55,477 nt of DNA from Octopus bimaculoides. Lineage: Eukaryota. A program made the position numbers and the translations under genes. The notes below the pieces were generated by a model. It did no database searches. It was not told the DNA's origin and was given only the letters and a program-made list of their open reading frames with translations. Shown piece after piece: positions 613-55,183 of the stretch; the first letter of the stretch is position 1; each line of letters starts with the position of its first letter. The DNA lies in contig NC_069000.1 in assembly GCF_001194135.2 (NCBI RefSeq), forward strand, positions 40,814,950-40,870,426. The letters run 5' to 3'.

Positions 613-2886
613 TTAGGACAAGTATCCTAATGGTTTCATCATGTCTCCGGTTTTAGACATTTTAGGACAGACTGAAGAATTTGATTTAACATTCATGTTC
701 AAAGTGGACATATTGTGTTCATGGTGATGGCGGTGGTGATGGTGGTGGTGATGGTGGTGGTGGTGGTGATGACCCATGGATGATGTCATGCCCATATGTA
801 TTGGCCTTGTGAAGGGAGGCACATCAGAATTAGGGAGGGCCAGATGTGTTAAACTGTTCTGCTTGGTTTGTGGTACTTCATATTCAGCATTGTATGCAGT
901 CTGTTGGATTTCGTTAGCTTTCTCACATTCCTTGGCATGTTTTGGCAAAGAAAGCTCAGAGAACATCAAAGAGCAGTATGCACAGTGAAAAGATCTTAGT
1001 TTCTGGAAGTTTTTAACATGAATATACAGGAATTTAGTTTTACTAAAGGCCATTCCGCAATGACTGCATTTATATAATTTGGGCACTGTTGAATCTTCAT
1101 TTTCCATTTCTGCTAGAGTTTGACAATCCTCTTCGTCTGAACATGAAACATTCCAAGAATGTTCCTCATTTGGGATTCTGTTTGAATTTTGATGGTTCAA
1201 CTTGGCATGAGTGGTGGAATTGTTTGTAAGTTTATTTGACTCCATTAACATCTCTATGTGTCTGTCTCCATCCATTAAAGAAGATCTTGATGTTTCTAGC
1301 CCTGCTATTTTATCATCTTTTCCAGAGTGCATCTGCTGCTTTTCATTGGAAGATGAAAGCTCTAAAAGACTCTGGGTTAAGCTGAATGAGCTTCCAAGAT
1401 TCAACTGGTGGTCATCTACATGTTTTTCCAGGGCAGCAATATCAGAGAATATTTGCTGACAATGAGAACATTCATAGGGCTTGTATCGGCTCACATCAAG
1501 CAAGTGGAGGAGATATTTAATTTTCGTGTACAACGTCTTATTACAGTGCTTACAGTGAAAGGGTTTCTCTCCAAGATGGGTCTTCCAATGACGTGTGCAT
1601 GTAGGTTTAGTAGCAAAGTCTTCATAACACAATTCACAACGGAATGGTTTTTTTGTATGCTTCCTTTCGTGGCTAACAAGAGCATCTGATGACAGAAACA
1701 CTTTACAACAAATATTGCAACTATATGACTTTCCTGGGTTACGCCAAGCAACTGGCGACGAAGCAGATATTGATAAGTTGTAATGTGCTTTGCGATGCAC
1801 AGCCAAACTGCTAGACGTTGAAAATAGTTTGAAGCAATGTTCACACTGGTGTCGCTTCTCCCCTGTATGGGATCGTGTGTGCACACCAAGACTACTGGAA
1901 GTGGTGAAGCATTTTTCACAATATACACATTTGTAGGGTCTTTCGCCAGTGTGAGATCGTAAATGCACAGTGAGACTGCCAGACGTGATAAACATCTTGT
2001 CGCAGAATTTGCACTGGAAACGCTTCTCTCCCGTGTGAGTCTTGATGTGCACAAGAAGACTTCCAGAGGTTGTGAAAAGTTTTTCACAAAACTTGCACTG
2101 GTAATTCTTCTCACCTGTATGGGAACGAAGATGCACTAGAAGACTGCCGGAAGTTGTGAAGAACTTCTCGCACAGATCACATCGATATCTTTTCTCCCCT
2201 GTATGCGTACGTTTGTGCACTAAAAGACTTCCCGATGTGGAGAACATCTTGTGACAGGTCTCACATTCATAGCTTTTTTCACCTGTGTGTGTACGAAGGT
2301 GTATGTTCAAACTACTAGCAGTTGACAAAAGCTTCTCGCAAACGTTACATTTAAATGTCATCCCATAATGGGTCTTGAGATGCCTTGTTAATTGAGCAGA
2401 TTTTGAAAATGTCTTCTGACAATAGTCACACTGAATAGATCCATAATGTATAGTGCCAAGCATAGAATGGCATTTCATATGACGCTGCAACAGGATTGGT
2501 TGTGAAAAGATTTTCTGGCAATATTTACATCTGATTGGATTCTCTTTCATATCATAATGTCTGCTGCCGTGTTGACTATTGGAAGTTGGGATGTTCTTGT
2601 ACATATGTTCATTAGCAATATTACTGCCAGAATCCATCATTCTTTTGTGAACAAACCCTTGCTCAGAGAGTGGCAGCAGCATATCACTGTTTACTTCTGA
2701 GTGGCTCACACCACCTTCAAGCCACTTCCTTCGTTGATTGTCCAACATTGGAGTTGTGGATCCAATATGTTCACGGAAATTTATTGAACTGTCATTGTAC
2801 ATACTGTGATCTGGGAAATTATGATCACTTGGCACAGAATTGCTTGTATCGTTTAGAGGAGGCACTGACACTTCACACTCAGCCAT
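613..2886 (-). CDS. C2H2 (Kruppel-type) zinc-finger protein, 757 aa, ~15 fingers (three degenerate), single coding exon, poly-His tail
   Basis: Uninterrupted ORF with repeated CxxC-x12-H-x3-H motifs and TGEK/TGERP linkers. ATG at 2886 lies in good context (AAGATGG). An upstream acceptor TTTTTCTAATTTCAG|G puts the exon start at 3003. Confidence 0.93.
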
Positions 2887-7309: not shown

Positions 7310-7549
7310 TATAGGGCAGGGAATTGCCAATTAGTTAATAAAATTAATAATTAACAATTTTGCCAAGTAGTTCAGTATGCAAAAAAACCTTTATCGGTAA
7401 ACCATTTACAATTATAAACATATAGGGATCAGCATGCTGATCCTTATATGTTTATANNNNNNNNNNNNNNNNNNNNNNNNNNNNNNNNNNNNNNNNNNNN
7501 NNNNNNNNNNNNNNNNNNNNNNNNNNNNNNNNNNNNNNNNNNNNNNNNN

Positions 7550-17411: not shown

Positions 17412-17421
17412 NNNNNNNNNN

Positions 17422-19800: not shown

Positions 19801-20185
19801 CCGGTGGCATGTAAAATGCACCATTTGAGCGTGGTCATTGCCAGTGCCACCCGACTGGTTTCTGTGCCGGTGGCACATGAAAAGCACCATTCAAGCGTGG
19901 TTGATGCCAGTACCGCCTGACTGGCCCTCATGCTGGTGGCATGTGAAACGCACCCACTACGCTCTCAGAGTGGCTGGCATTAGGAAGGGCATCCAGCTGC
20001 AGAAAGTTTGCCAGATCGGACTGGAGCCTGTTGCAGCCTTCTGGCTTGCCAGTCCTCAGTCAAACCGTCCNNNNNNNNNNCAGATCGGACTGGAGCCTGT
20101 TGCAGCCTTCTGGCTTGCCAGTCCTCAGTCAAACCGTCCAACCCATGCTAGCATGGAAAGTGGACGTTAAACGACGATGATGATA
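19795..20185 (+). mobile_element. Repeat family A (includes an artefactual duplication around the N10 gap)
   Basis: gccggtggcatgtaaaatgcacc...ggcattaggaagggcatccagctg...ggacgttaaacgacgatgatga. Confidence 0.85.
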
Positions 20186-23168: not shown

Positions 23169-23414
23169 GCCATGGTAGCAGGATGAAAGGCAAAGTTGAT
23201 CCTGGCNNNNNNNNNNGCCGTGGTTGAAACCAATGGTGATTTTATTGAATAAATTTACTCTTTAGTATTTCAAGATATTTTCATGTAATTTTGATAAATA
23301 TATGTTAAAATGTGTAATTGTGTAATTTAGACGACAGTTTATTCACCGCAGCCATGGTAGCAGGATGAAAGGCAAAGTTGATCCTGGCAGGAGTTGAGCA
23401 CAGAATATAAAGAG

Positions 23415-24495: not shown

Positions 24496-24801
24496 NNNNN
24501 NNNNNNNNNNNNNNNNNNNNNNNNNNNNNNNNNNNNNNNNNNNNNNNNNNNNNNNNNNNNNNNNNNNNNNNNNNNNNNNNNNNNNNNNNNNNNNNNNNNN
24601 NNNNNNNNNNNNNNNNNNNNNNNNNNNNNNNNNNNNNNNNNNNNNNNNNNNNNNNNNNNNNNNNNNNNNNNNNNNNNNNNNNNNNNNNNNNNNNNNNNNN
24701 NNNNNNNNNNNNNNNNNNNNNNNNNNNNNNNNNNNNNNNNNNNNNNNNNNNNNNNNNNNNNNNNNNNNNNNNNNNNNNNNNNNNNNNNNNNNNNNNNNNN
24801 N

Positions 24802-42861: not shown

Positions 42862-43378
42862 TGATGATGATGATATATATATATATATATATATATATAC
42901 ATTTATGCACGTGTGTATGTTGTGTGCACACATGCACATGCATATAAATGTTAGAGAAACAGATCAGTGAGGAAGGAATGATAAATCGGTGCTTCAAACC
43001 GATCTATGTCTTCTGTACGAGATGCACAGACATTCTCTTCATATTCATACCATCATCAATGCATTGAACCAATGATTGTCCTATTGGAAACCTGTAACCA
43101 ACAATGCCATTTTTTTTTTTTTAATAGCTTAGTCAGAGAAAGAAAGATAGCACCACTGACCCTTTTCAAGGACTTTGTGACTGGAAAGAAGAACTTATCC
43201 TTAAACCAGATACCTGGCTTGATTGCTTGCAACAACACGAATTTTGTTAAAAGCTCCTCCCACCCCTACATAGTGCTGTTAAACCAGGCAGTGGATTAAG
43301 TCTACCCTTCAGATTGTTCACAGATGTAATATAATATATACATACATATATTTTCATACACATACACATACATATATG

Positions 43379-43429
<51 letters not shown>

Positions 43430-43434
<5 letters not shown>

Positions 43435-43505
43435 CGCCTCCTGGTCCACCAGTCCTCAGTCAAATCGTCAAAACCATGCTAGCATGGAAAGCAGACGTTA
43501 AACGA

Positions 43506-43510
<5 letters not shown>
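43430..43510 (+). mobile_element. Repeat family A 3' fragment
   Basis: ccagtcctcagtcaaatcgtc...gcatggaaagcagacgttaaacgacga. Confidence 0.75.
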
Positions 43511-43541
<31 letters not shown>

Positions 43542-44048: not shown

Positions 44049-44183
44049 TTAAAATCTATATCATATGCATGAAATAAAGATAAATAAATATATATATATA
44101 TATATATATACAAATAAATATATATATATATAATATATACATGTATGTATGTATGTATGTATGTGTGTATATCAACATAAAAA

Positions 44184-47100
44184 TCACAACTCATTACTTT
44201 TAGCAGCTTTACTGCTTTCGGTTGCCGCTATAGTTTTAAGATGTGCAGGAGTGAAACTGCATGTTTTTCTGTGTCTGTAAAGGGCACTAGTTTGTGTGAA
44301 TGCTCGCTGGCAGTAACGGCATTGGTAAGGTCGTTCTCCAGTGTGCGTGCGTCTATGGGTAACCAAATGTCCAAACCGCGAGAAGGCTTTATCACAGTAT
44401 TCACAAAAGTAACGACGACTTTCAGCTGAATGTGAAGAGTCTGACTGAGGCGAGAAAGTGTCATCTTGAACAACTTTGTTGCCTCTTTTATTAACAACCT
44501 TAGACTTTTTAGGGACACAATGTGCAGCTGCTGATGGAATAGACTTAAGGCTCTTACTTTCTTCTTGTGCAACATTACTCCCTAGCTGATCATGTGTTCC
44601 CTCTGTACTCTCTAGGCAATTTGTGAGAGCCATTTCCTCTTGCAAGTATCCACCATCTTGAACAATTTCTCCTTTTAGAGAATTTTTCATGCTTTCATTT
44701 GTGTGGTCAACACTTTCATCATTGGCTGAAGCTTTTGATTGTGAAATAGTAAGACTAAGAGGATTTGTTTCTGAATCTAAAGGATTAGGTTTAGAAGAAG
44801 GAAGAGGTTCAGTTTTAATGTAACAATCATCAGTTTCAGAATCCACTTGGGAAAGAAATAGATTTTCTGACAAGTGTGAGCACAATTCTTTTGAATTGTT
44901 TTTACATTCTTCACAGCGAGGAAATCCTTCAGACAGCTCATTAGCATTAGACTGGTTCTCCTCTTTGACCCTCTTCGGAGGTGACATTTCTGTAACTTCC
45001 CTACTGCAAGCTCTATTGTTTTGTTCTGAATCCGTGCAAGGTTTTGCACTAGGAGTTTTGGTCAATTGCTTTCTCTTGTAACTCCTTTGAGGAAAGCTTG
45101 TTGGGTTGTTAACAGAAGGTGCCGTATCCATTAAAAAACTTTTGTTTCTTTCCTTTAAACTATGGTGATCATCTAACAAAGAATTAATTGCTTGTCTTCT
45201 TGAAAGGCAATTCAAGTCACTATTAAGATCATAACTCGAGTGAAGCTTTCCTCGTTTCGACAGCTTTAGTTTTTTCATCAGTCTACTTCCAATCCCTGTA
45301 TGTAACCTTTTGCGGTTGATCTTATTGCTGATTGTTGTTGAAGTGTTGAGCGATGATGTTTTCTTATGCCTGCCTTCTTTCTCCTTTGTGAAAGCAGACA
45401 CTGTTCTACTTGTTTCTTCATCAAGTAAGTTGACAGTTTTTTTAGAGACATTAGTAAGATATTCTGGTTCTAAATCGGGATTTTCAGCTCTGTGCAACTT
45501 CTGTTTAGACACATTAGGAAAGACTGTTTCTGCTTTCGATGGCTTCTTATGTGTTTCTGAAATGCGATTTCCAACACAATCTTGCTTGTTACTTGGCACA
45601 CACTGGAAAAGAGAAGTTGTTGCATTGGCCTTGAGACTGTTCTGGTTTTGAGGAGTTTTTTCTGGATCTTTCACTATCCTATCTTCAGGAAGTACACTTG
45701 TATTATGAATCACTAGAAAGCAAGTCTTGCGGTGCCTGTTAAGGGCGCTGACTTGTGTGAATTGCTTACCACAACCAGAACATTTGAATGGACGTTCTCC
45801 AGTGTGGATCCTGAGATGCATTTTTAGGTGACTAGAACGAGTGAAACCCTTTCTACAATGAGTGCAGACAAACCGAGATAAGTTTTGCTTTAATGAACTA
45901 TTTGTAGTGGGATTAACAACTGCAGGGTTAGAGGATTTATCCAACTGGGTAACTTTGTTTCTAGTTTTGCCAGTAGCACACTCACTGTTTCTAGGAGTGG
46001 TCGTACTGCCTTGCTTAGATTTTAAAGATGTCTGTAAAGAACTATACTTGGACTTAGCATTAAATTTTTCTCCTGGATTTTGTTTTGATATTGACTTTTT
46101 TAGCATTGTTTGTTTTTCGAATCTTTGTGCCTTACTTAGAACTGGAACCAGGTTATTATTTGGAATTGTGATTTTTGGAGGTTGTTCAACAACTAAATTA
46201 GAAAATTTGTGTTCTCTCCTTGAATTAACTCCTGAATCTGGATCATTAGTTGAATTTATCGTAATTTCATTTGAGAATTGTTTCAATTTATCAATTGAAT
46301 ACTGCTTAGAACATTGATCACTTTCTGATGGATTTTCAAAGTTCAAAATGGATATTTCTGGTTGACTAGAATGTTCTCTTAATGATGGATTTTCTATCAT
46401 GAAAGGCTGATTATGTTGGTCTTCTGGTAAGGTGATACCAGAGAAAGGAGATGTTGAAGCATGATGTCTACGACTTTCAGCTTGAGCATAGAATTTTCGC
46501 GTGAAAGGAGACAATATACGGTCAGTCGAAAACCTGTATTTGTTGATGTTATTCAAAGCTTTTTTAATTACTCTACGTACATTCTGGTTGAGAGAATTTT
46601 TCGTAACCAACCCTAATTGGGAAGTATCAGGGTTAGAAGTCTTTCCATCCAGATTAAAGTTGGAAAATTTTCTTCGCTGAAACTGTAACGAGCGACTGTG
46701 ATCCTGCTTATTCTGCCGAGATTTGCTGTAGGGATGCAACTTGTTTGGAAGAGTTCCTCTCTTCATTAAAGGAAATCTTTTGACATTACCAGTTTTACTG
46801 GTAGAACCTGAGTCTGACATCTTCAACTGTATTTCAGGAGCAGAATATACAGTTCGACTGGAGCTAAGTGGTATTTGGAATACTTTAGATTTTTTTGAAG
46901 TTATGGACCCATCATTGTAATTGGGTACAATGTCCTGATTAGATACTAAGCTTGTCTGAGATTTTGCTAAGGAAGTAGATTTATGATTAGAGTTTATATG
47001 TATTAGTAAAGAAATTAAATCAGCAAAGACAGTCTGACACTGGAGACACTGTCTGGGGGAAACAGCTGGAGTTATGGCAGAGGTTTCTAATTCACTCAGT

Positions 47101-50100
47101 TTGAATTTCAAATGAGAAAGAAGCTGTTCAAAATCACTAAATGTCATATCACAGCAGTCACATATGTAAATGCCATGACCAACATAATGCGAATAGAACT
47201 CATCTCTTTTATCAAAGACAAAACCACAACATATGAATTGGTCTGATGTTTTATCCAAGTCAAGTGCTGCTGTCGTTTCAGGCCATTTATTCCCTGACAC
47301 TGACAGAGCTACTCGAGCAAAACTGCATGTCTTTCTGTGCCTGTTGAGAGCACTTGACTGGGTAAAGGCCTTCTGACAATGACTACATCGAAATGGTCGT
47401 TCTCCTGTGTGAGTACGATGGTGCATAATCAGATGACCGCTACGGGTGAAAGTCTTTTCACAATACTTACAAGCAAATCTTTTGAATAAAGGTGTGGATG
47501 AAATATTTGTAGATGAGTCCATGTTCCATTGGTTCCAGTTGTTGCTGGAATCCTCCCAGACAACATAATCATTCATAGCAGACATTTGCTTTTCAATTTC
47601 AAGTTTTCTACTTTTGTCCATAGAAACCAGAGCTTGAGAAGCAACAGAAGAATTTTTTAGATTAAATAATAAATCTGGTGAATTGGATTCCATAGCTTGA
47701 AGATGGCAAATACCATCAGAATTTGTTTTATTCAGACCTTTAGACTTCTTATTATATAAACTAGATTCTAAGAGAGATTCTTTGTTAGAGACTGGATCTT
47801 TAGATGAGACTTCAATGATAAAATTTTCCTCTTCATCATCTTTATCTTCTCTCTTGATTGTGGAAGAATTATCCAGAAATGTTGACTGATGTCTAATTTC
47901 AGAATTGTTCTCATCAAAACTGATCTGTTCAGAAACATTCCAATCTTTAAAAGATCGGTGGCTAGCTAGATGTAAGTTAAAACTATCATTGCCTACAAAC
48001 ATTTGACCACAACATGTAAATGTACAAGTATTTTCCTTTTTCACTAATGTAGGTGAGGTGATATCAGAGGAGTCAGTGTGGTTACTCTCTTTCATCAATG
48101 TAGCAGACATATCTTCACCAGGATTGACTAGATTCTCTTGATCATCAGAAAATATTTGTTGGTTGGCAATATTTTGCTGATTAATGTCTAATGAATGAGT
48201 CATTAAATGAGAAATTACATCACCCTTATCAGAAAATATCTCATCACAAAAGTGACAATTGTATGTAGCATCAACAATTTCTGTTTTAATTTGAATGTCT
48301 GGGCGGTATACTGTGCTTGAAGCACAACTTTCAAGGTTTCTATTGTTCTGACTGGTATTATTCCTAGAAGACAAATTAATCTCTTGTGTATAATTTTTGC
48401 TTCCAGAGTCCACTTGAGAGCAATTTATCTTAAAAGAACATACCTTCTGGTGTTTGATAAAGTCATCAAGTTTCAGGTACTCACAGCTACAGTATTCACA
48501 TTTTATGATACCTTCATTGCCTTCTTCACAAGGGATTTTATCAATGCTATTAAATCTCACCTCAGACATCTGGGTATAATCTCTATTTAATTGATAATCC
48601 TCTCCAGCTACATTTTGCTCAGACAATAAAGAACTTTTATTTTTATCCAAGTCTGAATCTATTTGGATTAGGTCTCCTTCGTCTTCTTTTGCTCGAGTCT
48701 GTATATTGTGAAGCATTAGTAACTTAATTCGGCAACATGTTTTCAGGTGCCTGTTGAGAGCGGAAGTCTGGGTAAATGCTTTCATACAGTACTGACATGA
48801 GTATGGCCTCTCTCCTGTATGGGTGCGAAGATGTTGCATTAAATGACCAGACCGTGAAAATCCACGATTACAATATTGACAGACATAGCGCCGAGTTTCA
48901 GACAGGTTCTCTTCATTTGAAGAGGCCTGATTAGGTTTGGAGATGATGTTATCTGAATTATGAAGCAGTGTTTTTCTGTCATTTTTACTTGATGTTCTTT
49001 GATAGTCTGATAATACAACATTTGAGATCGTTTGCATATTTTCGGAGTGTTGTACCTCTGAATGTATTACAGAACTGTCAATATCAGTAGAGTGATTGTC
49101 TTTTATATGGAAACTCTTCATATGCTCATTAAAATCATCTCCCATGAATGTTTGGTTGCAACAAACAAACATCTTACAACTGTTTGTAAGATTCATACCA
49201 TCTTTATTGAAACTAACTGTGCCCTCTTTATTAGTCTTTTTATCAGATGTAGATAGATCACCATTAACTTCTTTCAAATCAATCACTATTTGGTCTAAGT
49301 GCTGAGAGCTACCATCATTGCTGTTATCCTTACTATCACTGTTTGTTTCAGTCCCTGATTTCAATTTGATATTTTCCTGAGAAACTGACTGGTTAAGAAT
49401 TTTCTCTCCTGTTTTCTCATCAAGTAACGGTTTATTAGTAGTTATATTATTCAAAACTAAATGCTCATCCAGATTTACTTTGTTGTGGTACAGAGCAAAA
49501 GTGCTACTATTGTTGCTAGATTTGCCTACAGTCCTTGCTTTTGACAGCGACTCTTCTTTCAAAGGTTGAACATTAGAAGTATTTTGTGTCCTTTCTAAAC
49601 TATCACAAACTACTGATTGTTCAGGCACTTTATCCTGGCAACCATTTTCATTAATACCTTCACAGTCAGACCGGTTGTTTGCAACAGTCAGTGGAGTACA
49701 CAAAACGATGTCAGCAAAATGAGAGCTTTTACCTTTAGTACTGTCGTTGGAAATATTTTCAGCTGACAAATTCGCAAAGGTGGTAGAAGAACCACATAGT
49801 TTCAGATGTTGTTCAAACTTAGACGATGAATAATAGTTTTCCTTACAAAACCAACAAACATAATGCTTTTTACTTGTGTGGAGAAGGACATGCTCTTCTA
49901 GTAGCATCAATGAAGTAAATGATGCAGTACAATAAGAACAAGACAATTTCCTAGCTGAATCTTTATTGTTGGTTGTAATTTCCTGTTTAGATAAGTTATT
50001 TGACAGAGTGCTACACTGCCCATCAGTTTGATCAGAAATGTCAATATTTTCTGCTTTGGAAGAGTAAGAAAGCATATCACATGCAGAAGTGTTGCCTAAA

Positions 50101-53100
50101 CTGTCCATAGAGTTAAGATTATCAGAACATTTACTTTTATCATCATGTTGGTCAGATAAACTAGATAAAAGTTGCCAATTCTCAAACAGTTTGGTATTAT
50201 CTGACTTATTCTGTAGAGGACTAGTTGCTTCTCCAGTTGTTTTACTCCCAGTAGAGTTTGAATCCAACTGACCGGTAATTACTAAATCATTATTCACTTG
50301 CTTGTCTACAATGTCAGCAATACAGGATTCTGACAATATCATTGCACAGTTCTTTGAGTGTTCATAAAAAGTACCAGAATTTTCAAATGTTTTGGAGCAT
50401 TTTGAACAAGTCAGTGATTTCTCGGCAACAGATAATGTTACATTGACATTGCACTGTTCTTGAGGACTTGAAACTTTTTCAAAATCAATTGAACAATTAC
50501 TTATAGTATTATCATCCATATGGTATTGATCTTTTAACTGGCTTGCATTAGAGCTATTGCTGTAAATTGCTGGTGCATCACTGATTGTCATGTCAGTGCA
50601 ACCTTTACTGTCTGGCTTGGATTTTGCAGTTGTGGAATAAAAGCTGGAAGAAAATGGTGGGGTTTCTGGTGAATAAGTATGGAAATGGCTATCTTCGAAA
50701 TTTGGAGGTTCATCTGTATTGCTGTTTACAGAAGAGTCAGCAATCTGAGAAATATCAGTTGTAATCATGTCTCTAAAGTCACTTCCTAAGGTCAAAGTGA
50801 CATTAGGTTCAGGAATTTCAGGTGACATACTAGAATCATTGGATTGCAAACTTTGGAAATGATTTGCATCTCTTAGTTGGTTAGTCAGTTCAACAACAGC
50901 TGTTGGTTTTGTTACATTAGAATTAGATGCAATCATGGAATTTTCTTGACAGCTGATACCTTCTTCAATCTGATCAATTTTTAGCTCACCAGAACATTCT
51001 TGGAGATTATTGTGCACAACTTGCAGAGCACTCCCAAGTATCATATTTTCCTGTTCTTCAGAGTATGAACTGTTCAAAGTACCATCAAATTTTGCCTGGT
51101 CAAGATTATTTAAGGTATGAGTCCCATGGAGAAGCTTGTAAGCATTTAAAACTGCTTCATTTTCTGCTGAATTTGATTGTGTAGAACAACTAAGTCTGGC
51201 TGAGTTGACTGACAGACTGGAACTGGAAGAACAATTAGAGGTATTGTGATTAGCAACTAAAACATTGCTAAAATATTCCAAGCTATTTTTTTCTTGCTTG
51301 ATATCATTACCACTCAACTGCTTGGTACTTTTATATTTCCTGATATAATTCTTTCTCATGTGTCTTGAGAGCAACTGAGAATCAGGAAAGTTTTCCAGCA
51401 TCAATGGAGAATTGTACAGGATGTCATCATTTAGTTCACTATCTTGCAAGGAGATTGTATCTTTGCCTTTTCTGTGGCACTCAACATGATTCCGCAGCTC
51501 TTTGCTACTACTGAAGACTTGGCCACAGCAGGTAAAAGTGAAGTTGTCAGGATCAATACTGTCCTCTCTGATTTTACTGTCCAAGTTAATTACTTCAGAG
51601 CGCTCCATTGCACTAACAGCATTCCCAGTAGTTTTAATGGAGGCATTTAACTCCGGGTATCTGACTCGTAGGCAAGTTTTGGTGTGTCTGTTTCGAGCAC
51701 TAGATTGTGAAAAGGCACGACCACAACTCTCACACTGGAATGGCTTCTCTCCTGTGTGTATTCGGATGTGTGTTTCCAGATGAGATTGTTTGAAGAATTC
51801 CTTTGGGCAATAACTGCAAGGGAAACTTTTGCGCTGAATGTCAAATTCATTTACAGTCTCCACAGCAACACGAGAATTAGAACTAACAAGATCTCTTTGC
51901 TCTAAAACGTTGACGTCTTCATTATGAATGGATTTGTTGGTGTTGGAGTCTATTTGAGAATGGGAGTTTTTTTTAGACTCACTGGAATGTGAAGCTTTGT
52001 GAATCTGATACACAATGGAGGAATGGAAAGGCTTGGAACAAATATCACAAACTAAATTAGTTGACGAATTGGATTTGGTTTCAACACTACTGCGTGTGTT
52101 AAAAACATTTCCTTTGTTTACCATTGCAACAGTAGGTTTTCCTTTGGTGTCAAGAGATTCTGATATCTTGCTAGTTTTATCAGGTAACAGAGAAATATTT
52201 GATCTGCAGGTGTTAGAGTTGGTCAATGGATGCTCAGTTTGAAACTGAGAGTTATTGGTTGAATGTGAAGAGTTCTTTTTCATTATCAGCGAATTAACTT
52301 TGTTTAAGAACTCTCTATGATTTGAAGACTTACTAGGGGATTTTTTAGTTGAAGTTTTAGATCTTGTAATGTGTTTGTTTCTTGCTGAAAAAGATCGCAT
52401 TAAATTAGTGGTTGATGAATTTCGACTCTGCAACTGAGAAATCTTTGATAAATTATTAACCCGATGGTGTTTCTTTATATGGACTTTAAGATGAGGATAT
52501 GATACAAACTCAACTAAACAAATGCTACACTGATAGGTTCTATCATTTTTTGTATTAAAACTTTTTTCCCTATGTTTTACTTGTCTAGACTCAGGCATGG
52601 GAGCTTTGAAACTTTGCGTCTTACTTTTAATCATGGAAGTTGAAGCACTTTTTAGTTTGGTGGATGGCGTTTTTACAAAGCTGTTCTTGGCTGAATCAGT
52701 GTGATCATTAACTATATCAAAGTCATCATTCACAACATCTTCATTAGGCTTTAATTGACTTTTATGTGCTGCTGGACACACTTTTAAGTGGCTGTCATAT
52801 TTAGACACTTGTTGAAAATTATCACCACAGAATTGACATGTGAAAGAAATGTCACTGCCAAGGGTTAAGTCAGAGGTAAGGTGATATTGTGCAGTAGTGT
52901 CCCATTGAATATTCGAATTAATGCTTTGAGCAACACTGCATGTCTTTAGATGGCGATTAAGTGCACTTGATTGTGTAAATGCATTACCACAAAAATCACA
53001 TTTAAATGGTCTTTCTCCTGTATGTGTACGTAAATGCTGGGTCAAACGGCTAGTACGTGTAAATTGGCGTGAGCAGAACTGGCAAGTTAAGTGTTGGTGA

Positions 53101-54473
53101 ATTTTGGTTTTCACAGAGTCTTTTAATTCAGAAGATTTTAACTTGGAATTTATATTTTTTTGAACTTTGTTAGCATTTTCTGCAATTTTTTCATTGTCAC
53201 TTTGATGAGATAACTGGTTGAAATGTTTACTACTTGTCAAATCATTATTTGGCAGAATTTGAGTTGAGAAAGAATTAGATGAGTCCTTCCAAGATTTGTC
53301 CCCATTACAAGCAAGCAACTGATCTGAAGACAGAGAATCTTGTGAAGTAAAAATAGCAATGGATGTATCGTTAGAGCAGTCTTTTGGTAATGTTTTTTTG
53401 CTAATTGCATCGGTTTTCTCCCGCAACAGTCTGAGATTTTCAGCCAAACTATCAATGTCTGATAACTGAGATTGGTCAATTTTTAACTGCTTATTAGAAC
53501 TGTTACCAGGTGACATATTATTTTTATCCCAGACATACGTGCTATCTTGAGATTGGTCAGTTAGTTCAATTGTTATTGGATCAAATATGGGATCATGTTG
53601 GTTATTTGCTTGAGAAAAGCATAAGTTGTTCTTTGGAGATTCCATATGATTATCAGTTAGATTGATGGTGATCTTGTTTTGGTCAAGACTATCTTTTGTC
53701 ACCTCTGGCTGATTATCATGAACAATTATTTGATACTGTGACTCAGAACTTGACAAGATATTCAAATTTTCTTTGGTTGACGACTGCTTTTTACCATTTA
53801 TAGACGTGTTTGTCTTATTGTGGAACTGGCTTTGTTTCTTTCCTATTTTATCTATAGTAGTAACGTCTTTCATCATATCATTGACATGGCTGTTGTTGTT
53901 TGGTAACAGGCTCAATAATTCAGAGTGAGACGGGTCACTGTGACCAGCTATGTGCTTGTTGTAATCAGAAGAATCTTTAAATGTTTTATTACAACAAACA
54001 AACATTATGTCATCATGTGTTTCAATATTATCATTTGAAAGTGTTCCAAGTGATGTAAACGCACTTTCTGAAGCAGATAGCATTGCATAGTGTTTTTCTG
54101 CTGCTGCAATAGAAGTTTCTAGCATTTTCACGTTAGCTGATAACTCCAGGCTGTCTTTGTTTGGCACTTTAGTACAGATTTTCATATGGCGATAGAGAGC
54201 ACTGGATTGAGTGAAGGCTTTGTGACACTGTTGGCAAACATAAGGGCGTTCACCTGTGTGAATACGACGGTGCATCACCAAGTGGCCATTGCGAGAGAAT
54301 GACTTTGAACAATAGTTACAGGTATATTTTTTTGAAGCTGTAATGTCTGTAATTGCAGACATGCTTGGGTTTCCATTTGCAAGAAAAGGGAGTTCCTTTG
54401 TACCTGCAGTATTGTTTACAAAGTTCAATATAGGTGGCCATTCGACCGATGCATTCTGGTCTGTACTATCCAT
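44184..54473 (-). CDS. Giant multi-zinc-finger protein (~3429 aa): seven dispersed C2H2+C2HC pairs plus scattered single/atypical fingers in S/N/K-rich, likely disordered linkers; single coding exon
   Basis: 10.3-kb uninterrupted ORF. The first in-frame ATG (CACATCATGG, 54473) follows an in-frame TAA at 54627-54629, and the track's start at 54593 is TTG. Seven HTGE(R/K)P-linked finger pairs. Confidence 0.92.
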
Positions 54474-54739
54474 GATGTGATCTAGTAAACCTAGTTCGAA
54501 ATCACAACAAAGCTTCTCTTTCTTGAGAAGTAATAGAGTAGCTGATGAAAAATATGAACCACTTACAAATCCCTGTATTAGGTACCATGGCAACAGTTGA
54601 AGAGAAATGATATAAGTGTATATCAGTTACCATGGAGATAACTCATGTACAAGGTACCAAATGTTAACAGGGTCTTCAATATATATGTCACAGAAACTTG
54701 TTTCTGTCATGAATTGGTGTGAGTTGATCTACGGAGATC

Positions 54740-54765: not shown

Positions 54766-54847
54766 TGCATATGAAAAGAATGATACTCAGTGAATTAGTA
54801 AACAGTAAAGAAACCAGAGTACAATATCTAACTGTATTAATTAATCA

Positions 54848-54996
54848 ATCATCATCATCATCATCGTTTAACGTCCGCTTTCCATGCTAGCATGGGTTGG
54901 ACGATTTGACTGAGGACTGGTGAAACCAGATGGCTACACCAGGCTCCAATCTGATTTGGCAGAGTTTCTAAAGCTGGATGCCCTTCCTAACGCCAA
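54848..54996 (-). mobile_element. Repeat family A
   Basis: (CAT)n-cgtttaacgtccgctttccatgctagc...gcccttcctaacgccaa. Confidence 0.85.
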
Positions 54997-55183
54997 AATG
55001 TAAATATAAAAAGTTCAAATGCTATCTTCCTCACATGGCATAATATTCATTCACCTTCAGTAGAAGAATAAGGATCTCACATCATCACAGCAGAGCAGTT
55101 TCACTGACATTATAACCCAGTGGTGTGTGTGAGTGGGTGCTGGATTACTTTGCATGCCTTCAACTCTTTTCATGATCATATTT

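Follow-up and report, generated by a model that had tools for sequence, protein, structure and literature searches.

A giant Octopus zinc finger protein with seven dispersed C2H2 plus C2HC finger pairs

A giant zinc finger gene with a single coding exon

We analysed a stretch of 55,477 nucleotides from Octopus bimaculoides (NCBI RefSeq assembly GCF_001194135.2, contig NC_069000.1, positions 40,814,950 to 40,870,426 of the forward strand), which we refer to as the window and within which all positions are counted. The window contains a single-coding-exon gene for a giant zinc finger protein, of which the members named so far come from Octopus only. Its stop-free open reading frame occupies 44184..54593 on the minus strand, as do all features of the protein given below, and runs for 3,469 codons in DNA of ~36% G+C. 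The called protein, P0001, begins at an ATG at 54473 and has 3,429 residues, in agreement with the giant of ~3,400 residues described by an earlier reading made from the letters alone (the sequence-only reading); its coding sequence (44187..54473, minus strand) is one exon without interruption, and the stop codon lies at 44184-44186.

A Pfam scan of the whole of P0001 matched PF00096 (zf-C2H2) with 222 bits over 10 stretches (cut-off 25.2) and PF13465 (zf-H2C2_2, double domain) with 158 bits over 7 stretches. The same scan detected no domains other than zinc finger families and, among N-terminal effector domains, no KRAB, SCAN, BTB or ZAD. With these two matches and a TGE(R/K)P linker in 7/7 of the modules described below, P0001 is a classical (Krueppel-type) C2H2 protein. 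Its finger-like units number ~28 and account for ~19% of its residues. An Rfam scan of the window gave no match, and Tandem Repeats Finder, run on the locus, reported no repeat within the open reading frame.

That this frame is non-functional, as a chance open reading frame, a pseudogene or an assembly artefact, is extremely improbable. Contig L003 from a related octopus was considered as a cDNA and rejected, since its collinearity with the window continues through the non-coding 5' flank, which makes it genomic, a point that leaves some room for a non-functional locus. Against it stand the length of the stop-free frame at such a base composition, intact orthologues in at least six assemblies, and a ratio of nonsynonymous to synonymous substitution (dN/dS) that is well under 1 throughout. 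We conclude that the locus is a real, intact and conserved gene whose product is uncharacterised.

Seven related C2H2 plus C2HC modules

We searched for modules with a regular-expression scan and then re-translated each interval. A module consists of a C2H2 finger, a TGE(R/K)P linker and a finger of the form C-x2-C-x12-H-x3-C, and this unit was found at seven places. Module 1 (54174..54326) carries the helices RNGHLVM and QSSALYR in its first and second fingers, module 2 (52938..53090) carries RTSRLTQ and QSSALNR, and module 3 (51672..51824), in which the linker is TGEKP, carries KQSHLET and QSSARNR. The corresponding helices are RSGHLMQ and QTSALNR in module 4 (48735..48887), RSGHLIM and QSSALNR in module 5 (47325..47477), RSSHLKM and QVSALNR in module 6 (45720..45872), and RFGHLVT and QTSALYR in module 7 (44259..44411), which ends 24 residues before the C-terminus. 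AlphaFold2 models module 5 as two beta-beta-alpha fingers with a predicted local distance difference test score (pLDDT) of 71-83. The helix of the second finger follows Q-[S/T/V]-S-A-[L/R]-[N/Y]-R in 7/7 modules and its finger ends in H-x3-C in 7/7, and the helix of the first finger has R at position -1 and H at +3, each in 6/7 modules. The residue at +6 of finger 1 is M, Q, T, Q, M, M and T in modules 1 to 7, respectively. The scan and the re-translation thus recovered the seven pairs at the coordinates that the sequence-only reading had given, as well as its description of the helices (R-1 and H3 in most first fingers, Q-[S/T/V]-S-A-x-x-R with H-x3-C in every second one).

As a background we used 256 other large zinc finger proteins with 6,418 fingers and 4,352 two-finger windows. 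An H-x3-C end occurs in 2.06% of the background fingers, and the contact quartet Q(-1), S(2), A(3), R(6) in 0.03% of them, compared with 7/7 octopus second fingers in both cases. Protein identity between modules is 51-73% (mean 62%), with 52-67% identity in DNA, whereas identity of the modules to the background two-finger windows has a mean of 41% and a 99th percentile of 55%. Because their mutual identity and their contact quartet exceed the background, the seven modules are a distinct and related set beyond chance. To call the pairs near-identical, as had been done, overstates this level of identity, and their synonymous sites are saturated (see below). The linkers between pairs are 363-930 residues long, and the largest gap between modules houses two further units, a divergent eighth pair and what is left of a ninth.

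By sequence, the closest solved structures to the modules are DNA-bound classical fingers, namely those of ZNF568, PRDM9, Aart, CTCF, ZBTB7A and Zif268. In Pfam, the C2HC finger of the plant BIRD/IDD factors was matched just below threshold (26.9 bits, with a cut-off of 27). FOG/U-shaped-type CCHC fingers bind GATA factors and not DNA, and the sequence-only reading had drawn on this precedent in proposing that the pairs might dock proteins or RNA. Under this proposal the pairs, or at least their C2HC fingers, would form a scaffold without DNA binding. The cysteine found as last zinc ligand in every module and the near-threshold match to the BIRD/IDD finger fit such docking, and the numerous lone or atypical fingers and conserved short linear motifs described below hint at protein contacts. 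However, the C2HC finger of every octopus module is joined by TGE(R/K)P to a classical finger, the contacts at -1, 3 and 6 are strongly constrained, final fingers ending in H-x3-C are known from DNA binders such as CTCF (PMC8084297), and the best solved-structure matches are DNA complexes. The FOG analogy is accordingly weak, and we consider docking in place of DNA binding to be rather doubtful.

Orthologues and distribution of the gene

The 90% cluster of P0001 contains proteins from O. sinensis (XP_029647658.1, annotated 'uncharacterized protein LOC115221598') and O. vulgaris (CAI9737359.1, annotated 'finger 236'), which are 93.2-93.6% identical to P0001. Three further orthologues are P0002 (Logan SRR11869390), with 86% identity to P0001 in a full-length alignment (85% by BLASTP), P0003 (ENA ERZ21867824), with 35% (31% by BLASTP), and P0004 (Logan ERR12921340), with 36% (29% by BLASTP). 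P0003 and P0004 share 68% identity with each other and keep the modules in the same order as octopus. They are probably from decapodiform cephalopods, because their divergence from octopus is deep.

An exhaustive HMMER search of 1.84 billion representative proteins with a 926-residue profile, built from the sequence that lies between modules 3 and 4, recovered the clusters of P0004 and P0002 end to end. Among the best 150 of its 31,382 matches there were no other full-length relatives, and the remaining listed matches cover finger segments only. The conserved linker motifs described below were found in none of the 270-odd fetched proteins outside the family, and we found no paper that names the accessions of the orthologues. 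The gene appears to belong to no described family. The sequence-only reading had considered that this might be a known conserved protein with an architecture already characterised; its orthologues are instead labelled 'uncharacterized' or, in O. vulgaris, mislabelled 'finger 236'.

We rejected the latter label as a best-hit artefact, since the ZNF236 proteins that we fetched have neither C2H2 plus C2HC pairs nor the linker motifs. Orthology to ZNF236 was judged by a length of ~1,850-1,950 residues and ~30 clustered fingers in the same order, and separate ZNF236-like proteins are present in octopods (P0104 and P0107). The best BLAST segment between ZNF236 and P0001 scores 97-100 bits, compared with 889 bits for the true orthologue P0003; BLAST coverage against ZNF236, and likewise against the fish ZNF1035 discussed below, is inflated by finger-to-finger alignment and does not discriminate. 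P0110, an ENA protein, was also rejected as an orthologue because hhalign aligns only its finger regions to the family, and we regard it as an analogue. This protein of 1,893 residues has dispersed four-finger clusters, three of which are near-identical and each end in a C2HC finger (FTQSTNLNVH...AFKTSGALNGHxKxC), with one at each terminus. It represents an independent case of repeated, dispersed clusters closed by C2HC.

Selection on modules and linkers

The start-to-start distances of modules hardly differ between octopus and P0003, with 412/407, 422/450, 353/367, 470/470 and 535/525 residues and, as the one exception, 487/363 for the last interval, although one separately aligned linker region is only 26-27% identical between octopus and the distant lineages. 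Of the octopus modules, six have the positional orthologue as their nearest relative (76-86%), with module 1 showing 76% identity to its counterpart in P0003 and modules 2, 3, 4 and 7 showing 82%, 80%, 86% and 84% to the orthologous module. The exception is module 6, the least conserved, with 58%. Likewise, all modules but one share the +6 residue of finger 1 with their positional orthologue, module 6 again being the exception (M versus I). Between paralogous modules the synonymous differences are saturated (proportion of synonymous differences, pS, of 0.69-1.05). This saturation, the nearness of 6/7 modules to their positional orthologues and the lack of a tandem repeat in the open reading frame indicate that the modules are old duplicates held similar by selection and not products of recent duplication or gene conversion.

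We estimated dN/dS by the method of Nei and Gojobori. Between the window and L003 the value is 0.095 for the modules and 0.396 for the rest of the protein, and between L001 and L002 the respective values are 0.074 and 0.343. The modules are therefore under strong purifying selection and are the most constrained part of the protein. With values of 0.34-0.40 outside the modules, compared with 0.07-0.10 within them, the linkers are relaxed yet non-neutral. This comparison of modules with linkers had been suggested as a check by the sequence-only reading.

Octopus genomes hold very many C2H2 genes (PMC12513265), and a zinc finger gene with a contiguous array lies in the same window (613-2886). Both observations would suit a gene that is an ordinary product of the cephalopod C2H2 expansion, that is, a fast-evolving repressor of transposable elements in which the pairs are a by-product of internal duplication without architecture-dependent function. 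This explanation appears improbable in light of the contact residues and module order, which are kept between lineages that are ~35% identical overall (29-31% in local alignments), and of the low dN/dS of the modules. Nor is there a DNA-level repeat in the open reading frame, or a close paralogue with these modules among the best matches listed.

Further finger pairs, lone fingers and adjacent-cysteine fingers

The seven modules stand where the sequence-only reading placed them; the count, however, missed an eighth pair, the remnant of a ninth, seven lone fingers and five fingers of an unusual type. The eighth C2H2 plus C2HC pair (49794..49946; LSCSYC...) is divergent and has non-canonical contact residues, and its second finger is strongly conserved in all four orthologues. 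The remnant of the ninth pair is a lone C2HC finger at 50346..50408. At the aligned position, residue 1286, P0003 has a full pair, and P0004 has a degraded one. We take the gene product to have seven canonical modules and, ancestrally, nine pairs.

Additional lone C2H2 or C2HC fingers number seven. A lone C2HC finger lies 34 residues past module 2 (52776..52838), and lone C2H2 fingers lie at 52464..52529, 51987..52049, 48195..48257 and 46983..47048. A conserved 39-residue block that ends in ...HQKVC (48438..48554) is a C2HC finger with a conserved N-terminal extension carrying an extra cysteine, and a conserved C-x2-C-x7-C-x-H knuckle is present at 44868..44924, of which C3187, C3190, C3198 and H3200 are invariant in the orthologue alignment.

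The unusual fingers have adjacent cysteines and follow the pattern h-x-C-C-x3-[FY]-x5-h-x2-H-x3-H; we call them CC fingers. A pattern scan with re-translation located five copies, at 53940..53996, 51474..51530, 49107..49163, 47958..48014 and 47175..47231. The fourth is the most conserved of the five, and the fifth is directly followed by a C-x-C-C finger (47106-47168). At each of the five places all four orthologues retain the CC doublet, and two of the copies have an extra cysteine 3-4 residues upstream. Among the 256 background proteins the pattern occurs once. In an AlphaFold2 model of module 5 together with the CC finger region, computed from an alignment of four sequences only, the CC finger has a pLDDT of ~40. 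The adjacent-cysteine finger is undescribed and may be a new finger type.

Composition and conserved motifs of the linkers

Outside the finger-like units P0001 is rich in serine (15%), asparagine (10%) and lysine (8.5%). When the linkers were compared with one another, the CC finger segments were the sole recurrent similarity. The sequence-only reading had held that the linkers have diverged completely, which is correct within the protein apart from these segments, but between species they retain conserved motifs and are under purifying selection. The best-conserved linker block (50634..51053) contains a SALQVVHxxLQ helix and the motifs IPxPNVxLxLGSxFxDxxxTD and YSPETPPF. In its AlphaFold2 model (mean pLDDT 51.6, predicted template modelling score, pTM, 0.18) there is one helix, at SALQVVH, and no folded domain. 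The linker chain is thus predicted to be disordered in the one segment that was modelled, and this prediction and the S/N/K-rich composition agree with the flexible chain that had been envisaged.

Further conserved linker motifs are FxDIxLxTPLTxxxNxSDC (49659..49727), FNSIDKIxC...C2HC and YSKxRQNKQ. The basic motif NVRRxIKxAxNNIxKxR (46530..46592) is the only basic cluster kept in all four orthologues and could possibly act as a nuclear localisation signal or form a helix. P0001 has nine psi-K-x-E (SUMO-consensus) sites, five of which lie in linkers and are conserved across all four orthologues. These are YIKTEP at 44802..44822 and the sites at 51291-51305, 48276-48293, 48030-48047 and 47844-47861. 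On the basis of this consensus they would be candidate SUMO targets.

Flanks of the gene and neighbouring sequence

Upstream of or just inside the open reading frame, between 54400 and 54760 on the minus strand, candidate splice acceptors are present as tttctttcttacag near 54739 and ctgcag near 54405. In the 5' flank of the giant gene ~285 bp of the window (54819-55103) are lacking from the otherwise collinear contig L003. This insert has the look of a short interspersed element, with a (GAT)n run at its end. Near 51137 (codon 1113 of P0001) the window has 30 bases, or 10 codons, fewer than its relatives, which encode KPEATVYKNS in O. sinensis isoform X1 and in O. vulgaris and KPESAVYKNS in P0002. 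Precisely these 10 residues are also missing from O. sinensis isoform X2, and this 'isoform' may therefore reflect an indel polymorphism rather than splicing.

Immediately past the stop codon lie AT-rich microsatellites composed of (AT)n and (AAATAAATAT)n (43329-43541 and 44072-44170), and candidate AATAAA signals occur on the minus strand at ~44012 and ~44043. Assembly gaps appear as N runs at 7457-7549, 17412-17421, 20071-20080, 23207-23216 and 24496-24801; those at ~23.5-25 kb have low-complexity microsatellite sequence on both sides. The second zinc finger gene (613-2886, minus strand) lies ~41 kb from the giant gene on the same strand. Its open reading frame of 757 residues encodes C2H2 fingers joined by TGEK linkers in one contiguous array, which is the ordinary cephalopod type, and 13 consecutive histidines at the C-terminus. 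The contrast that had been drawn between the giant protein and such contiguous arrays is well illustrated by this neighbour.

A multivalent DNA-binding scaffold as the favoured reading

The modules carry, as far as their sequences tell, every hallmark of tandem DNA-reading fingers. The best reading in our view, and one that we hold to be somewhat more probable than its negation, is that the protein is a multivalent DNA-binding scaffold for GTA-NGG-like sites. In this model each module would contact about six base pairs of the type 5'-GTA-NGG-3', with finger 2 (Q-1, S2, A3, R6) reading 5'-GTA-3' and finger 1 (R-1, H3) reading 5'-NGG-3', in which N would be set by the module-specific residue at +6. 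A lone module would bind weakly, and a chain with several of them would gain strong binding through avidity at sites clustered within tens of nanometres. Linker motifs and psi-K-x-E sites would recruit partners, modifiers or co-repressors, with repression or chromatin organisation as the most likely outcome.

The sequence-only reading had predicted the same GTA-NGG hexamer for every pair. In support of it the contact residues are shared, and the GTA half-site agrees with an engineered 'GTA-specific QSSSLVR module' (PMC2632909). The modules are nevertheless not equivalent. Because finger 1 varies at +6 from module to module, with the residue retained in 6/7 positional orthologues, we expect the sites to form a family in which the fourth base depends on the module, and not one hexamer. 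By standard polymer scaling, a rough estimate, a disordered linker of 400 residues typically spans ~15-20 nm and at most ~140 nm, which is about the scale of neighbouring nucleosome linkers. Conservation of linker length would fit a model in which reach matters, and the conserved psi-K-x-E sites, like the short motifs, point to modifiers or co-repressors that may be recruited.

The same variation at +6, which the positional orthologues share except at module 6, could also be taken to mean that the modules are independent, alternative DNA-binding heads with different targets or partners, without cooperative multivalency, bridging or looping. That 6/7 modules are nearer to their orthologue than to their paralogues implies non-redundant roles and is in line with this idea, as is the functional separability of the Schnurri pairs (PMC10853822). 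On the other hand, the finger 2 contacts are identical in 7/7 octopus modules, so that at least half of every site would be common, and module spacing is kept despite change in linker sequence, which is easier to understand if the modules act jointly. We regard independent heads as unlikely, albeit worth serious consideration.

Several points weigh against the scaffold reading. The GTA-NGG prediction derives from a simple contact code together with one engineered-module precedent. Alanine at +3 is a weak specificity determinant, and two-finger units alone may bind DNA poorly. More than half of the finger-like units are lone or CC fingers that have no predicted DNA role, and the main function of the protein could lie there. 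In the distant orthologues the linker of module 6 has decayed to TEEWP/TEGWP and several of its contacts are lost. Given this degradation and the decay of pairs 8 and 9, some modules are dispensable. In the O. vulgaris model the N-terminus differs and meets the common sequence at ...NTAGTKE, and the true first coding exon may consequently be outside the window. With respect to distribution, that the gene occurs throughout the coleoids is something we infer, and a very diverged relative from outside the cephalopods could be hidden among generic finger matches beyond the best 150 of 31,382. In addition, the window shows no enrichment of GTANGG (50 sites compared with 60 expected), although 55 kb has little power in this respect.

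A bolder version extends the scaffold into a cephalopod-specific chromatin 'ruler' or bridge. It posits that nine readers of a single short motif family were set ancestrally at even intervals of ~350-490 residues along a disordered chain, and that they would gather or bridge dispersed GTA-NGG-like copies, for example those of a cephalopod repeat family or of regulatory clusters, with the conserved linker lengths setting the reach between sites. This proposal, and with it the separate suggestion that the five CC fingers form an undescribed metal-binding or redox-sensitive finger class, is a speculative one to which we give little weight. Bridging and looping by the giant protein, which the sequence-only reading had suggested, are pure conjecture.

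Cephalopod genome architecture is extensively reshuffled. Against the contiguous-array expansion of C2H2 genes in cephalopods, the gene stands out as a single-copy giant that has retained its finger pairs together with the order and spacing in which they occur. Should the modules recognise one short motif in common, the protein would be a natural, avidity-based reader of clustered weak sites with at least seven heads per chain, which is more than in Schnurri or Spalt, and a candidate chromatin organiser. If they do not bind DNA, it would be merely another uncharacterised zinc finger gene.

Comparison with known systems

The Schnurri/HIVEP (ZAS) proteins resemble P0001 in being very large and mostly non-globular, with classical finger pairs that are far apart and similar in their kappaB-like specificity. 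The group is marked by two ZAS domains, in each of which a finger pair is accompanied by acidic and Ser/Thr-rich stretches. The separate pairs (1,2 and 4,5) each bind DNA at similar kappaB-like sites (PMC10853822; PMC1361774). They differ in having two conserved pairs, compared with seven to nine in the octopus protein, in that both fingers of a pair are C2H2, and in their contact residues. No Schnurri/HIVEP protein was among the matches listed (the best 120, and the best 150 of 31,382), searches that involved no direct comparison with a named HIVEP protein.

Spalt/SALL proteins likewise have several two-finger clusters spread along the chain. They are ~1,000-1,300 residues long, their second fingers carry the SAL box, and an N-terminal C2HC finger is present. 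In the octopus protein the helices of finger 2 are of the QSSALNR type and the finger ends in H-x3-C, and a pattern scan of P0001 found no lone C2HC finger N-terminal to module 1. Judged by the SAL box and the N-terminal C2HC finger, P0001 does not appear to belong to this group. The sole SALL match, from a linker-profile search that missed the query's own family, covers fingers only and 6% of the query. In SALL4 the ZFC4 pair alone suffices for sequence-specific binding to a short AT-rich motif, and dispersed weak binding of this kind shapes chromatin (PMC9838217, PMC9672407).

WIZ shares with the octopus protein its widely spaced fingers and long chain. Its fingers are single and do not form TGERP-linked pairs with shared contacts, and we detected no homology between WIZ and P0001. 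Experiments connect WIZ with CTCF/cohesin loop anchors (PMC7212317, PMC4977153), and looping is among the roles that the sequence-only reading had guessed for the octopus protein.

The only named group among the matches listed with a repeated C2H2 plus C2HC (H-x3-C) pair is the fish 'zinc finger protein 1035' (for example P0042, P0061, P0095 and P0096), also uncharacterised, in which such a pair is repeated 4-7 times over 2,100-2,800 residues; in the literature we found one passing mention of it. In contrast to the octopus protein, its pairs lie at intervals of ~90-200 residues amid numerous other fingers (32-39 C2H2), its contact residues are unrelated, and it has neither the octopus linker motifs nor CC fingers. 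The best BLAST segment to P0001 scores 64-70 bits, and finger-to-finger alignment of this kind does not discriminate between shared ancestry, which would show as collinear similarity outside the generic finger framework, and likeness of the finger alone.

A last finger with cysteine in place of the final histidine is shared with the DNA-binding arrays of CTCF and PRDM1. The Basonuclin/Disco proteins, another group with separated pairs, have no more than three of them and an atypical, long second finger. Such 'split pairs' have been described for Basonuclin/Disco, and finger 5 of PRDM1 is a terminal C2HC finger (PMC2889900), as is finger 11 of the DNA binder CTCF (PMC8084297). In both PRDM1 and CTCF, however, this is a single terminal finger of one long contiguous array and not part of a repeated two-finger module. 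A 2025 survey of cephalopod C2H2 genes mentions neither C2HC fingers nor linkers or spacing. Seen against these proteins, P0001 follows the known design of dispersed finger pairs and exceeds every characterised case in its number of modules.

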